A stretch of DNA of 63,936 nucleotides, the filler included, from Olpidium bornovanus S191 (Eukaryota > Fungi > Olpidiomycota), in assembly GCA_017911155.1 (NCBI GenBank). It is 25 parts of 25 records of this genome, joined end to end, with 100 filler letters (N's around TTAATTAATTAA, not from the genome) between each part and the next. Parts side by side here need not be neighbours in the genome. Positions count along the whole stretch, not along the records: positions 26,122 to 29,417 come from JAEFCI010009412.1; 24 more parts are not named here. The stretch is one strand, 5' to 3'. This document shows positions 26,339 to 31,425 of this stretch, piece after piece. The stretch's first letter is position 1. Each line of letters opens with the position of its first letter. A program made the position numbers and the translations under genes. The notes under the pieces are model-generated. The model made no database searches and was not told the origin of the DNA. It saw only the letters and a list, made by a program, of their open reading frames with translations.

Positions 26339-28393
26339 TCACAAAAGTGTGGTTGTCGCCAACTGCCGCGCCACTCCAGCCGAAGAATCGTCAGATTCAA
26401 GGCCCTGTTTGAAGCCGTTGGCACCGCTTTCGGGCCTCGTGTCATCATCGCCCGAAGGCTCTGCGTGCCTGGAATGCTCTTCATTGACCAAAGGCTCAGA
26501 GCGCCAAGCATCCGGCGCAAATCTGAGGCCCCTTGCAGTGATAAAGGACCACAAGCGCGTGGGAACGGCGTGCGCCATGGTGACCCGTCCGTCATGCCCT
26601 TCCGGGAAGTCGAGGACGCCGGTCCCATGAGGCTCCATGTTGGCGAAGAAAAACAGCATGTTATTTTCCAACCGAAAGCAGATGCAGTGCCCAGGCAAAA
26701 TGAACTCGCCCCCGATAATCCCCGGCTGCTCCATGCAAAACGCCAGGCACAAATGATTGGCATCATGGTCTATGTGGATTCGCGGCTCGAAACGCACAAA
26801 ACCAATGTCAAAATATGACCCCAACTGTCCCCCACAAAAAAAACAAGCGCACACACCGCACACACTTGGTAATTATACGTCGCCCACATCGGCGGCGACG
26901 CATCCGGGAAAACATTATGGAAGGCAGCAAGTTTGTCGCTCAGGCACGGATTATGCGCCTCCACATGCGCCAAGAACTTCTTTGCCAGACCATGCTGCGC
27001 AGAACAGTTGGCTCGCATCGTCAGGCCTGCAGGCTCCCTCCGCAGCGCCGGTTTTGCCAAATAGTTGTGCAATTCGCCCCCCCCACGAGGGCTCGCAAGC
27101 CCAAAACCGGCTATCTGGCCGCCGGTCCGCCCTCCCGCAAGATGTTGTCGCATCCGGCTCTGACTGACCCCCATCTGCGTCTCCATCAAGATTTTGCACT
27201 TGTGGAGCCAGCGGTTAACCGTTGTTGCCGACGCAAAATCGCGGCAAAATCCGCCGATGACGGCCATGGTCTCCTCGTTGAATACCCAGCACTCGCGCAT
27301 ATGCCTTGTCGGATTGATGTTTTCCAGGCTCGAAATGTCTAATAACTCGTCCGACACTGGCGTAAGTGACGCATCCAAGCTCAACATAAACTTGCCCAGG
27401 CACAAATCGGCAAGATCCTGATGTCAAGGAAGGATGAAGCAGACCAGAGCTCCGCGACAACGGCTTTCCGGCGTTTTCGGCCGACCCGGGCGCGCTCGAC
27501 GGCCCCAGGCAGCAGAGATACGCGGAAAGCGGGCTTTCCGCGTGCCAATTTGGCTTCCCAGCAAAGTGCACGCCTGCCGCTCGGAGGGCCATGCAAAAAG
27601 CGTTTCGGCCGTTGTTTGCAGGCCTTCGCGGTCAGCCAGAAGCACTTCCAGCGCCCCAGGCACGGCAATGCCCTCCAACAGCGTCATAACAGCCTGCGCG
27701 CATGCACGAAGCCGAAGCGTGAACAGGCTTAGCTTGCTCCCTTCCGAACAAAACGCGCCTCTCCCGAGCTGAACGCAGCGCTATGACGCTGCCCCCACGG
27801 CGTCCCGCAGAGACGCCTCGACGCTTGGGCACCCAGCCATGCACCAGGCGGACACCGTTGCACTGGCTGCCCGATAATGCCACAGACTAAGGCATACTGC
27901 GCGGTGGCTGTCCGCCAGCAGCCCTCGTCCGTGCGTACCTCAGGAAGTCACCAGGCAGCGGGCCGTCCGGACACACAGGGCGCACCAAGGCCAAGAAGCA
28001 TGCGCATCCACCACGCGTGCCGCCATGCGCCGACTAAACGCCGTTGCACTAGCTACCCGATAATACCACGGACTAAGGCATACTGTGCGGTGGCCTTCCG
28101 CCAGCAGCCCTCGTCCGTGCGTACTTCAGGAAGTCACTAGGCAGCGGGCCCATTCACCACATGGGTCACGCGTGAAGACGGCGGAAATGCGTGCCCGAAG
28201 CACGAAAAAGCGTGCGCGCAGCACGAAAAAGCGTGCGCAAACAAAGGGAAGCAATGGGCAGGACAGACGCAGGACGTCTCACCTCCAGCTTGACGCGCAG
28301 GCCGCGCCGCGTGTTATCGGCCTTCCAGTCCTCCGCGACCTCCCAGTACCCGCGCACAGACGCGATTGCAGCGTCCGCTGCGCCTGACGCCAT
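26339..28393 (-). pseudogene. TET/JBP-like 2OG-Fe(II) dioxygenase gene, paralogue 1 (complete span, one in-frame TGA)
   Basis: Model: exons 28393-28283, 27693-26866 and 26824-26339. HID at 26776-26768, GGEFILP, HGT at 26629, RVT at 26587. TGA at 27426-27424. Confidence 0.75.
27870..28150. repeat. Two ~95-bp direct repeats in intron 1 of paralogue 1
   Basis: 27870-27964 and 28056-28150 are near-identical. Confidence 0.9.
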
Positions 28394-29003
28394 GGTGTCA
28401 CGACGGCCTCGCCCGTTCTCTTTCTTTTTTTTGGCCTTCCCTTCTTTCCGCTTGTTTCGTTTTGTTTTTTTTATCCCCGTTTTCGCCGAGCGCCATCGGG
28501 AACCGCCCTTTTATGCTTGCCAAGAATTAGACTTCGACCCCGGGCGGCGTTAAAATTTCCAAAACATTGGCCGGCCCGTCAACCTCACTCGTTTACGCTT
28601 CCAACGCGTCCCTTTTTCTTGCCCTTAACTTCCCGTTCCGGGAAGTGGGGGGGGGGTGTCACAATGGCAGGCGCTGCGGCGCCTAACAGCCTCGATACAC
28701 CCACGCCCTTTGCGGGGTGCGCACTGTTCTTGCCATCACTGTGCGCGCCGTTCTTGTCATTCTCGATAACGGCGCCCGCATCCACGCCGCGCACAAAAAG
28801 GCCCGAGGGAAGCCCCGCATGGGGCTCTGGCCAATGGAAATAGTCGGCACCGACTCTGCGGCCAATAAGTGCAGAGACGAAACGCCCCGGGCGTAACGAG
28901 ACACCCATGCGTAACGAGACGCCCATGCACAACACGGCGCACGAGAACCACGCAAGGGTACATTGAAACACGACGAAGTCTGAGCGCCAAGACCCGTAAT
29001 CCA

Positions 29004-29143
29004 GCAAGGCTTGTCTACGGCGTATATAAGCCGTAGTCGAGCAAGGCTTGTCTACGGCGTATATAAGCCGTAGTCGAGCAAGGCTTGTCTACGGCGTATA
29101 TAAGCCGTAGTCGAGCAAGGCTTGTCTATGGCGTATATAAGCC
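29004..29143. repeat. 37-bp tandem array (3.8 copies) with an internal hairpin
   Basis: Unit GCAAGGCTTGTCTACGGCGTATATAAGCCGTAGTCGA; CTACGGC/GCCGTAG stem with loop GTATATAA. Confidence 0.95.
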
Positions 29144-31425
29144 TGTATACATCGTAATCAACGTTGAAGGGCACAGAACTTTCCCCGAACCCGCGCTCCC
29201 GAACCCCTCGATCCAGATCTAGCCAGAAATCCCACAAGTCCCCCGAATCTGTTCCTCGATAGCACTTTTCTGTGCGTAGCAGATAATAGACTTGTTACAT
29301 GCAGCAAGGTTCAAGTCTCTTTATTGCGACGTCAGGTCCGGGTGCTACAGGTATGGTGACGTGCTAGCAAGTAAGAAAGAAGAACTGTGAACTGGGGAAT
29401 TGGGGGTCAGTGAGGAGNNNNNNNNNNNNNNNNNNNNNNNNNNNNNNNNNNNNNNNNNNNNTTAATTAATTAANNNNNNNNNNNNNNNNNNNNNNNNNNN
29501 NNNNNNNNNNNNNNNNNTAACGAGCAGCAATCCTATATAAATTGCTTGTAACTGGTAATGTGCTGATCTCGGTACCACGTGCGACGTTTGCAAGCGGAAG
29601 CAAGGCGGTGCTTCTGACAAATGATATCGCCGTCCATGCTCCTGCAAGCACGCGTCGATCCAAATCCGCGCAGCCGGGTAAGACACCATGGCGAGCACTA
29701 TCGCCACGCGTGACGACGCAAAACCCGAACTGCAGTTCCCTACGCTGGGCGGTCGACACTAACTTGGTGCCAGCGAGGCGCGTGTGGGACATGATAATTC
29801 AGGCGCCGTTCGGAGACGGTGTAACGCTGTGCGCCGGCGCCGCCTTATCCGCTTGGAGTTTAGCCCGCGCAGCAATCAAGCGGCGCTGACGCTATCTGGA
29901 CGGAGACCTGCTCGTCTGCTGTGTTCCCACGTGGACAAGCTTCCGCGCCTCTTCGGCGACGCCGCCAGACGCCGCGCGGCGCCGCCTTCTCCGCCTTGGC
30001 CGATTTCTATATTCTTGGCAGGCGAGCATCAGCGGACATCCACCTTTGGGGGTATTCGTTCCCGAAAGCTTTGCTAACCAAGCGCCTTCGAAAGCCATGC
30101 TTTTTCTTCTCCGAAAGCTTTCGCCCACCCGAACAAGAAACACTTTGAGAAAGCCGGGCTGCTGGGCAGACGTTGGAATAAACCGGCACAGGACAGCCTC
30201 AACGGACCTACGACGCCGCGTTAAATTGCAACGCCGACCCAGTTACTTCGTCAAAAGTTGTCACAGAAGCGCCTGGAGGATAAGCTCCGGCTACCGAAAT
30301 ACTCGGCGGGCCATCGCACTCTCCCCGCGATCGCTCACCTGCGTTTGGCCGGCCAAATGACGTCGGCAGATGAGTCCTCGTTAGCATTCTGCATGTTATT
30401 CCGCTCAGCCACGGAAGGTATACTTTTCGGCTTTTTTGTCGTGCACGTTCGGTCAAGGCACTTTCGGCAGCGGCATCGTTGTTGTCCCCGTCACATCCGT
30501 CTGCTCCTGCCGCCGGTCCCGTGCGCGCCTTGCCGTTTCTCGTCACATGAAGCTCGGGCGGCCCGTCTCCTGCGGAAGCTGGCCCCGTTGCCGACGACCA
30601 GTGCCGTTACCTTGGCTCCGACGCATCCTTCATCTCCAACATCTTCAATGTATTGGCGTATCTCTGCCGCCGGCTGGTTGTGCCTCCGTGCGGGCGGCTG
30701 GGCTGCAGTATATCAATGGGTGCCCAAACGACGCAGCGGCCCCAGTTGCCGTCGAAACCGGGGCGAGGCCAATGCAACGTGATACTCACGCGTAAACGAT
30801 GAGTGTCCCGTTGGCGGCAATCGACGCGTGAAACCCCCCTGCCCCTTGGCCCCAGTCGGCGCTTCCGACAAGGCAACAGTCTCCGCTGCAGATGCGGATC
30901 CCCATGCGAGGACAGAGTCCCTGTGCGTACAAACAGCGCCTCTTCGTGATAAATCGGTCCTCGTCTTTTTCGTTTGCCTCGGGGCGGGCGCCAGTGAAAC
31001 AGGGTTCTCCCGACCGGACATCTGCGCCCAACCGCTTCTGTGTGGGACACAGCCTGGAGAGCGGCAGGGAAGCGTGCCTTGCGTCGAAAAAAGAAGAATT
31101 TGTGCAAAAATTTTCGGGAGCTTTTGGGTTCTTTGACTGGGAAGAACACGGACGTAACGACTTCAGAAAACGGAACATACAGAATTTGAAAAGGGCATGA
31201 NNNNNNNNNNNNNNNNNNNNNNNNNNNNNNNNNNNNNNNNNNNNTTAATTAATTAANNNNNNNNNNNNNNNNNNNNNNNNNNNNNNNNNNNNNNNNNNNN
31301 CAAAATGCGGGGGGCCGGTTGGACGTCAAAGCGAAGCGGGGTTTGGGAATGCAGTCTCTGGGCAAAAATTTTCTTCGCGAAGTGGGTGGTCGGGGGGGGG
31401 GGGTATATCGGAAAATTCCTTTTGT

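Follow-up and report, generated by a model that had tools for sequence, protein, structure and literature searches.

TET/JBP enzymes carried by mobile elements are thought to act as a counter-defence against silencing by DNA methylation, and dioxygenases of this kind borne by fungal transposons were reportedly described by Iyer et al. in 2014. Fungal examples of the AG, PU and PE types are carried by Kyakuja/Dileera/Zisupton, hAT, Harbinger, IS3EU, EnSpm, Plavaka and Helitron elements (Kojima 2025, PMC12730594), the hallmark of the PE type being an HxE motif that replaces HxD (PMC12730594, section 3.4). The TET/JBP homologue CMD1 (5mC-modifying enzyme 1) from Chlamydomonas reinhardtii (PDB 7CY4-7CY8; PMC7854593) is also borne by a mobile element, the DNA transposon DNA-1_cRei (bioRxiv 10.1101/2022.06.16.496473). 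According to the 2025 survey, TET/JBP enzymes are not encoded by any retrotransposon, an absence for which reasons were offered (PMC12730594), and TET is not mentioned in the paper on retrotransposons with cytosine methyltransferases (PMC5890265).

Here we describe a gene for a TET/JBP-like enzyme from the fungus Olpidium bornovanus S191 which looks like an antisense, intron-bearing passenger of a chromovirus, and whose product would be the first enzyme of TET-like type known from a retrotransposon. The window, by which we mean the whole stretch of DNA that was analysed (63,936 nucleotides, filler included), is assembled from 25 parts of this genome; the piece studied covers positions 26,122 to 29,417 and comes from JAEFCI010009412.1.

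Exons, introns and an in-frame stop codon

The gene is located on the minus strand and consists of three exons (28393-28283, 27693-26866 and 26785-26342), which code for a conceptual product of 461 codons if the second intron is 80 nt long. Exon 1 (28283..28393, 37 codons, ATG at 28393-28391) encodes MASGAADAAIASVRGYWEVAEDWKADNTRRGLRVKLE and was recognised by its match to positions 1011-1106 of L003, another O. bornovanus contig (48% identity, E 6e-7), both sequences ending at KLE. Intron 1 (27694..28282, minus strand) is 589 nt long, runs from GTGAGA to GCGCAG and was delimited by its donor and acceptor contexts. The exon ends are shared with L003, where KLE is followed by GTGCAT and the acceptor CGCGCAG by ILFQALEG, with an intron of 373 nt. 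Repeats within this intron of the window copy are a pair of direct repeats, each 129 nt long (27836-27964 and 28022-28150), and a tandem array of 2.6 copies of a 21-nt unit (28185-28238).

Exon 2 (26866..27693, minus strand; 276 codons) is supported by tblastn matches to other loci and encodes two conserved segments, first Up (AVMTLLEGIAVPGALEVLLADREGLQ...) and then N (MAVIGGFCRDF...EPAGLTMRANCSAQHGL...PMWATYNYQ), which are separated by a basic linker. By tblastn, the N segment has matches of 33-72% in L002, L003, L006 and L007, and matches to the Up segment are present in L003 and L007. Exon 3 (26339..26785, minus strand) has 148 codons followed by a TGA stop at 26341-26339, and it encodes PRIH-I-D (which contains the HxD motif), GGEFILP, PHGT, GRVTMAH, an acidic tail and a C-terminal ATTTLL.

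Intron 2 (26786..26865, minus strand; 80 nt, GTGTGT...TTTCGAG) was delimited by comparison across loci. Its donor (26865) is found directly after ..NYQ and its position is kept in the window copy, L001, L002, L004 and L007, while the acceptor AG immediately precedes P-R-M/I-H in L001, L004 and L007, with a TACTAAC branch site in L004. At the same site L006 has an intronless NYQ-PKTH junction. A reading made earlier from this sequence alone (the sequence-only reading) had joined the motif-bearing region to the upstream sequence either by a 41-nt intron or by a homopolymer indel, and had modelled a protein of about 474 aa. A 41-nt GT..AG intron with the same donor does exist (acceptor 26825), and both versions keep the frame, but the shorter one leads to stop codons in L001. 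On this comparison the intron is probably 80 nt long, with the acceptor at 26786, so that exon 3 begins at PRIHIDHD; LGSYFDIGFVRFE is then probably intronic, and the figure of about 474 aa corresponds to the 41-nt intron. The homopolymer indel was rejected, as five loci share the donor.

The conceptual product is interrupted at codon 126 by a premature in-frame TGA (27424..27426, minus strand), which was read directly from the sequence. In L003 it is aligned to a codon for His; L007 is stop-free at this position but has a stop of its own about 60 codons further on. Given this TGA, the window copy is probably inactive or encodes just a product that is started downstream.

The N-terminus had been put at about 300 aa of unknown kind; it comprises approximately 313 residues, which match nothing known. 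The region does not form a single open frame, having the in-frame TGA, which had been overlooked, and the 589-nt intron. These residues yielded no match in Pfam, in the PDB profile search or in the Atlas, and the N piece returned nothing in a word-indexed search of 5.8 billion proteins. The region is conserved and under purifying selection: dN/dS is 0.09-0.30 for exon 2 and 0.14-0.20 for exon 3, and the range for the N and C segments (0.09-0.30) is like that of the adjoining chromodomain. Both intron positions are kept between divergent copies.

Linkage to the chromodomain end of pol

On the plus strand of the piece lies the 3'-terminal part of a pol ORF of Ty3/gypsy (chromovirus) type (26122..26326, stop codon at 26324-26326), its left side being cut by the edge of the piece. 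This part of pol encodes a chromodomain (Pfam Chromo, E 1.6e-13) and shares 49-78% identity with the corresponding chromodomain ends in L001-L005. In L004 a single Pol ORF of 910 aa comprises RVT_1, RT_RNaseH, Integrase_H2C2, rve, SH3_Tf2-1 and Chromo; the pol genes of L002 and L008 have SH3 and Chromo.

The TET/JBP-like gene is arranged tail-to-tail with this end of pol in the window and in seven loci beyond it, which are found on three O. bornovanus contigs (L001-L003) and four environmental contigs (L004, L005, L007 and L008), two of the latter (L004/L005) being near-identical. In the four copies whose frames are clean, the stop codons of the two genes are -36 to +12 nt apart. Several of the Olpidium copies are frameshifted.

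On the far side of the gene, a purine-tract scan identified a candidate polypurine tract, GGGAAGTGGGGGGGGGG, which is followed by TGTCAC (28639..28658, plus strand), so that a putative 3' LTR may start at 28657. A purine tract of 51 nt, with TGTCCG after it, occupies the equivalent place beyond exon 1 in L003. The putative LTRs of these two copies are no more similar to each other than shuffled sequence, and none of the contigs carrying the gene, which are all short, has a second LTR copy. A tandem array with a 37-nt unit (28994..29143, plus strand; 4.1 copies, each with TATATAAG) would sit in the putative LTR/U3 region and may have a role there. ORFs within 27700-29417 had no Pfam match, no Rfam family or tRNA gene was found in the piece, and scans of metagenome contigs (two scans) and of viral contigs were blank.

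One explanation of this arrangement is that the dioxygenase gene is part of a DNA transposon or composite repeat which is nested with, or was repeatedly hit by, a heterochromatin-targeting chromovirus. The TET/JBP genes hitherto reported from TEs are all carried by DNA transposons or Helitrons (PMC12730594; bioRxiv 10.1101/2022.06.16.496473), an LTR pair is not seen here, and in the most distant member of the family (P0011, on L009), as well as on the contig of P0015, the gene is convergent with a Harbinger transposase (DDE_Tnp_4). However, the abutting or overlapping junction with pol recurs in all seven further loci, at protein identities between the pol-linked copies of just 36-78%, and independent insertions would not reproduce such a junction. 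In addition, no transposase was detected in the window or in L001-L008, and purifying selection is similar for the dioxygenase gene and the chromodomain. We thus regard an origin of the arrangement by nesting or repeated hits as unlikely, and favour a gene that belongs to the chromovirus itself.

Motifs and family assignment of the enzyme

The peptide that drew attention to this locus is present on the minus strand, within an ORF at 26339-26863, and its motifs HxD (HID), GGEFILP, HGT and RVTMAH have the order claimed for them. As it is matched by 11 proteins among 1.84 billion representatives, the motifs are not due to chance; HxD, GGEFxLP, HGT and R-x-T are conserved in 12 relatives. In alignments of 12-13 sequences, G38, N55, F60, G67 and T68 are invariant, while the distal His and GGEF are conserved to at least 90%. 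H-I-D is encoded near the beginning of exon 3 and the H of PHGT follows 49 residues later, and the HxD...H iron-binding triad thus has the order and spacing found in TET enzymes. HxD is present in nine of the ten members covering the region, L003 having H-I-S instead. In TET/JBP dioxygenases, an Arg located 10-15 residues past the distal His binds the C5 carboxylate of 2OG (R1896 in TET2, R289 in NgTet1). The R of GRVTMAH is at distal His+14, and an Arg is present in 9 of the 13 members; L007 and P0005 have Gln in its place and the degenerate L002 has Cys, and it is absent in P0009.

When a family profile built from 13 members was compared to 177,635 PDB sequences, the sole match was CMD1 (7cy4, E 3.4e-4), and the H/D/H of the family aligned with His345, Asp347 and His397 of that enzyme (residue numbers from PMC7854593), which bears out the claim of TET/JBP-like order and spacing. 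PF20515 (2OG-FeII_Oxy_6) matches 8 of the 13 members (best 6e-5) and PF12851 (Tet_JBP) matches 5 (best 9e-4). These scans used exon-sized pieces, the gene being split by an intron, and all scores are under the gathering threshold (for PF20515 at best 23.6 bits vs 27, in P0010; for PF12851 at best 18.9 vs 34.9, in P0011), with 12.2 bits for the piece from the window. The approximately 140 residues which precede HxD may correspond to the approximately 145 profile positions ahead of HxD in PF20515. In the ESM-Atlas, 51 of the 100 clusters nearest to the window peptide are Tet_JBP or PF20515 (top score 0.94), and the same holds for 87 of 100 named neighbours of P0004. A search of 5.8 billion proteins with the family profile retrieved no sequences that bridge to annotated TETs, and the AlphaFold2 models of the C piece (13-row alignment, pLDDT 43.7) and the N piece (39.4) are too low in confidence for a reading of the fold. 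Membership in the TET/JBP superfamily, as proposed by the sequence-only reading, is supported by the PDB profile, Pfam and ESM-Atlas look-ups, which returned TET-type families alone, with the qualification that the Pfam matches are sub-threshold. Judged from these comparisons, the family is probably a very divergent TET/JBP-type dioxygenase.

The residues which hold the base in canonical TET/JBP enzymes are an aromatic residue at R+6, His or Arg at R+8, and Asp or Asn at HxD+3 (PMC7854593). By position count, which may be subject to a one-residue register shift, none of these is matched in the window copy: it has Ala at R+6, as had been noted from the sequence (most relatives have Ser), Pro at R+8 and Ala at HxD+3; at HxD+4, Asn or Asp is found in most family members. 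An activity on 6mA, which had been considered, found no support. Of the CcTet determinants, Gly331 (HxD+3) corresponds by position counting to another small residue, Ala, but the residue equivalent to Asp337 (HxD+9) is not Asp, so that CcTet-like 6mA determinants were ruled out. Membership in the PE type of fungal TET/JBP proteins was also ruled out, as the family has HxD, not HxE.

Because of these unmatched residues, and because the Pfam matches are sub-threshold and span just 40-55 residues or so, it could be argued that the gene codes for some other 2OG/Fe(II) oxygenase, such as an AlkB-type RNA demethylase or a protein hydroxylase, and that its likeness to TET/JBP reflects the generic double-stranded beta-helix. 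AlkB, a 2OG oxygenase, has been found on Gypsy elements before (PMC9289625), and the structural neighbours of one Atlas match include several cupin and 2OG families. We consider this improbable, as AlkB (PF13532), PF13640 and other 2OG families were not encountered at E<=1 in any of the 13 members, most of which match the two TET families. No AlkB or protein-hydroxylase family came up in the profile comparison, so that the better match to another kind of 2OG oxygenase that would have spoken against the sequence-only reading did not arise; furthermore, the sole PDB match is a TET homologue in which the 7-residue GGEFVLP is identical, and the great majority of feature neighbours in the Atlas are Tet_JBP. 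It is more improbable still that we are dealing with an ordinary host gene which by chance lies beside a retrotransposon remnant, even if the piece has just 205 nt of pol and NCBI annotates the Olpidium paralogues as ordinary hypothetical proteins, since the gene is multi-copy in one genome with a constant neighbour (L001-L003), the same neighbour is found in the environmental L004, L007 and L008, and many copies are degenerate, which is typical of repeats.

The proposed element and known systems

We think, with moderate confidence, that the window contains the 3' part of a chromovirus which carries an antisense TET/JBP-type gene, likely for a 5mC oxidiser directed against silencing. The piece would be the 3' portion of a Ty3/gypsy LTR retrotransposon with a pol that ends in a chromodomain, and the accessory gene, with its three exons and two introns, would occupy the opposite strand in the interval that separates pol from the presumed 3' LTR, and thus lie inside the LTRs. 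Its 461-codon product would end in a divergent Fe(II) dioxygenase core of TET/JBP type, formed by the HxD...H triad, the GGEFxLP strand and the Arg 14 residues past the distal His. As the gene is antisense, its introns would not be spliced from the sense-strand genomic RNA of the element and would survive retrotransposition, so that divergent copies keep introns at the same positions. The integrase chromodomain may steer the element into heterochromatin, where methylation-based silencing is to be expected, and the enzyme would counteract such silencing by oxidising a methylated DNA base. By analogy with TET/JBP enzymes on fungal and algal DNA transposons this base is most likely 5mC; the substrate, the co-substrate and the biological role are inferred. 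The earlier proposal of a DNA-modifying enzyme of this lineage is supported as far as its TET type is concerned, and is more precisely stated as a passenger gene of a retrotransposon, adjoining the pol gene of a chromovirus.

On balance we lean towards the view that a chromovirus lineage, present in Olpidium and in environmental eukaryotes, captured such an antisense, intron-bearing gene, possibly from a Harbinger element, and has kept it for long, this being the first case on a retrotransposon. If true, the retrotransposon exception among carriers of TET/JBP genes would be removed and TE-borne TETs would be extended to early-diverging fungi. A heterochromatin-targeting chromodomain integrase would be paired with a possible eraser of methyl marks in one element, which would also be a natural example of antisense introns that are preserved through retrotransposition. 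As the family is very divergent, with those 11 matches among 1.84 billion representatives, and has base-binding residues unlike those of every characterised TET, the enzyme may have another base as its target or work by a different chemistry, as the ascorbate-dependent CMD1 does.

CMD1 and the Olpidium family have HxD, an identical GGEFVLP and HGT in common at similar spacing, with 52 vs 49 residues from HxD to the distal His and 13 vs 14 from there to the Arg, but their similarity is limited to about 60 residues. Phe416 (R+6), Arg418 (R+8) and Asp350 (HxD+3) of CMD1 are replaced by Ala/Ser, Pro and Ala, and the Arg of CMD1 that is equivalent to the one in GRVTMAH points away; its co-substrate is ascorbate. 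CMD1 is found on a DNA transposon, whereas the Olpidium gene adjoins the pol of a retrotransposon. The fungal TE-borne TET/JBP genes resemble the Olpidium family in being multi-copy, in their association with a selfish element and in a presumed escape from methylation-based silencing, and PF20515, the best Pfam match of the family, is built on their proteins; the host is an early-diverging fungus, however, and not a member of the Dikarya.

With respect to architecture, the proposed arrangement, with tandem-repeat arrays and an accessory gene in antisense orientation in the interval from pol to the 3' LTR, also occurs in plant retroelement lineages that are not chromoviruses. Most antisense ORFs of these plant elements code for TRP28, a domain of unknown function, and not for an enzyme. 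Ty3/gypsy elements of the orchid Phalaenopsis have captured a 2OG/Fe(II) dioxygenase, which was proposed to counter host surveillance (PMC9289625). That plant enzyme is an m6A RNA demethylase of AlkB type (PMC9289625), while the family described here has no AlkB signal and matches TET/JBP. Retrotransposons of dinoflagellates and charophytes that encode cytosine methyltransferases likewise carry an enzyme of the DNA methylation pathway (PMC5890265); the lineages differ, and the captured methyltransferases are writers of the mark (PMC5890265), whereas the Olpidium enzyme is presumed to be an eraser or oxidiser.

Assignment of the dioxygenase

The peptide singled out in the sequence-only reading, with its HxD, GGEFILP, HGT and RVTMAH motifs, is present in the window and conserved; it lies in a minus-strand ORF at 26339-26863. 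Searched with HMMER against 1.84 billion cluster representatives, this C-terminal piece returned just 11 proteins: three from Olpidium bornovanus GCA_017911155.1 (P0001-P0003, 60–67% identical) and eight short ORFs of exon size from environmental assemblies. At the DNA level, the window is 74% identical to one Olpidium contig across 1.27 kb. In alignments of 12–13 sequences, G38, N55, F60, G67 and T68 are invariant, while conservation reaches 90% or more at the distal His and, within GGEF, at the second Gly and at the Phe. An acidic stretch (SEP.GDD...) and a conserved motif (26342-26359, minus strand) form the end of the protein, the motif being seen as ATTTLL, ATTTLV, VTDLL, LSSIL, VSDVL or LEQL in the window, the Olpidium contig L001 and relatives P0004-P0007.

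Three independent look-ups gave only TET-type families, but the scores are weak, all those from Pfam being below the gathering threshold. When a profile of the family (the window gene and its protein relatives) was compared with all 177,635 distinct PDB sequences at E<=10, the single match was CMD1, the TET homologue of Chlamydomonas (7cy4; E 3.4e-4, or 7.5e-4 with a trimmed profile). The alignment places H-x-D on His345/Asp347 and HGT on His397 of CMD1 (residue roles in PMC7854593), with an identical GGEFVLP between them. Of 13 members scanned with Pfam, eight match PF20515 (Tet-like 2OG-Fe(II) oxygenase; best 6e-5) and five match PF12851 (Tet_JBP; best 9e-4), and no other 2OG family matches any of them at E<=1. 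Tet_JBP or PF20515 is also carried by 51 of the 100 ESM Atlas clusters nearest to the window peptide (top score 0.94), and by 87 of 100 named neighbours of the divergent member P0004.

The matched stretch spans just 40–60 residues or so, and AlphaFold2 pLDDT values (43.7 for the C half, 39.4 for the N half) are too low to test the fold. Counted by position, none of the residues holding the flipped base in TET2, NgTet1 and CMD1 has a match in the family: six positions after the Arg of RVTMAH an aromatic residue is replaced by Ala or Ser, eight positions after it His or Arg by Pro, and three positions after HxD Asp or Asn by Ala. Because of the sub-threshold scores, the short match and these unmatched residues, we file the predicted protein under no characterised subfamily, while considering that it very probably belongs to the TET/JBP superfamily as a divergent member. 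The predicted catalytic triad, like the family assignment, is drawn from tool results. The PE type of Kojima, which has HxE as its hallmark, was rejected as the family has HxD.

Gene model and coding constraint

The gene model was compared with seven fetched loci. Exon 1 (28393-28283, minus strand; MASGAADAAI...KLE) ends at a GTGAGA donor and is 48% identical to positions 1011-1106 of the Olpidium contig L003, which likewise end in KLE, with GTGCAT next; coding resumes after GCGCAG in both. Intron 1 is longer in the window (589 nt vs 373 nt in L003) because it contains two 129-nt direct repeats (27836-27964 and 28022-28150, 87% identical, 186 nt apart) and a 21-nt tandem array of 2.6 units (28185-28238). 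A long stretch directly upstream of the exon 1 ATG (28407-28484), pyrimidine-rich on the plus strand and thus purine-rich on the gene strand, presumably serves this antisense gene as its 5' leader or promoter region. Exon 2 (27693-26866, minus strand) has 276 codons in one frame with an in-frame TGA at 27426-27424, where L003 has a His codon; the environmental locus L007 also lacks a stop there, and has its own about 60 codons further on.

For the junction to the catalytic exon a 41-nt intron had been proposed. Its donor GT stands, as it immediately follows NYQ in the window, L001, L002, L004 and L007. Its acceptor has to be moved: an AG directly precedes P-R-(M/I)-H in L001, L004 and L007, and the window equivalent is at 26786 (TTTCGAG, then CCGCGAATC), giving an 80-nt intron that keeps the frame of the shorter one. 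The intron is 83 nt in L001 (branch site CTAAC) and 146 nt in L004 (TACTAAC), and the 41-nt version would bring two stop codons into L001. In locus L006 the junction is intronless (NYQ-PKTH). The conceptual product has 461 codons, the earlier figure of about 474 residues following from the 41-nt intron.

L006 (1140-1896 and 1857-2297, plus strand) thus lacks intron 2; the frame shifts some 20 codons before that junction, and its arrangement differs from the other loci, with a weak integrase-like similarity on the same strand after the gene (25%, E 4e-9 to L004 Pol residues 500-650). Each of the deposited models P0001-P0003 (from L001-L003, GCA_017911155.1) is a chimera: the first two continue into the antisense strand of the pol chromodomain, the HxD segment is missing from P0002, and in P0003 the upstream part of exon 2 is joined straight to exon 3. 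The dioxygenase gene of L003 is also overlapped by a 614-aa model lying on the other strand.

Between copies, dN/dS (Nei-Gojobori) was 0.09–0.30 for the N segment of exon 2, 0.11–0.20 for the catalytic segment and 0.11–0.19 for the adjacent chromodomain; in the more upstream part of exon 2, pN was 0.29 vs a pS of 0.76. Selection has therefore maintained the coding capacity of the whole gene, including that for the uncharacterised first 313 residues, as the copies diverged. Individual copies decay, with the TGA in the window and frameshifts or stop codons in L002, L003, L006 and L007, and the window copy is probably inactive.

Probable setting within a Ty3/gypsy element

While the TET/JBP-like motifs noted earlier are real, the main additional result is their setting. 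The genomic piece (26122-29417) opens with the end of a pol gene, a plus-strand chromodomain (26123-26323; Pfam Chromo, E 1.6e-13; stop codon 26324-26326), on which the dioxygenase gene converges. The same convergence is seen in L001, L002, L003, the near-identical environmental pair L004/L005, L007 and L008. The stop codon of the minus-strand ORF lies 12 bases past that of pol in the window, and the two overlap in L001, L004 and L007. On its opposite strand, L004 encodes a whole Pol (RVT_1, RT_RNaseH, Integrase_H2C2, rve, SH3_Tf2-1, Chromo). As the dioxygenases of pol-linked copies share just 36–78% protein identity, the arrangement is old and inherited rather than a coincidence of insertion.

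Past exon 1, both the window (28639-28658; GGGAAGTGGGGGGGGGG, then TGTCAC) and L003 (509-559; 51 nt, then TGTCCG, about 450 nt beyond exon 1) have a purine tract and then TGTC on the pol-sense strand, as expected of a junction between polypurine tract and 3' LTR. The gene would lie within the putative LTRs, of which no contig carries a second copy and which show no similarity between the window and L003. No Pfam, Rfam or tRNA match was found in the region 27700-29417, which contains a plus-strand tandem array (28994-29143; 37 nt x 4.1, 97% matches, TATATAAG in each unit) that could be a repeated promoter/enhancer module in the U3 of the putative LTR. From established retrotransposon biology, introns can be retained in such a gene because, with the gene antisense, they do not read as introns in the sense-strand genomic RNA. 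We consider it likely that the gene is part of a retroelement, and somewhat less so, though still favoured, that it is both this and of TET/JBP type.

Possible role and comparison with known systems

The element would express the enzyme from an antisense transcript; as an Fe(II) dioxygenase, the enzyme would flip a methylated base, most probably 5mC, out of DNA and oxidise it, using 2OG or, as in CMD1, ascorbate. It may help the element to escape methylation-based silencing in the heterochromatin to which its chromodomain integrase would target it.

TET/JBP genes are known from fungal KDZ, hAT, Harbinger, IS3EU, EnSpm, Plavaka and Helitron elements, and in Chlamydomonas from Helitrons and DNA-1_cRei, which carries CMD1 (PMC12730594; bioRxiv 10.1101/2022.06.16.496473). 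The present family also occurs in a DNA-transposon setting, as its most distant relative (P0011, 29% identical; contig L009) and a second contig of the same cluster converge with a PIF/Harbinger DDE_Tnp_4 transposase (in L009, the two convergent genes are at 167-451, plus strand, and 513-1319, minus strand), which hints at exchange between element classes. The second contig (ERZ27397459, of P0015) also carries a DUF6818 gene. What is of interest is the carrier: a chromovirus bearing a TET-like gene as a passenger would be a variant of transposon-borne TET/JBP not known before. Its layout, an antisense gene between pol and the putative 3' LTR, is shared with plant Retand Ty3/gypsy elements, which have tandem repeats there too (PMC11963269). 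The nearest precedents for pathway enzymes on retrotransposons are the AlkB RNA demethylase in Gypsy elements of orchids (PMC9289625) and the DNMTs in retrotransposons of dinoflagellates and charophytes (PMC5890265).
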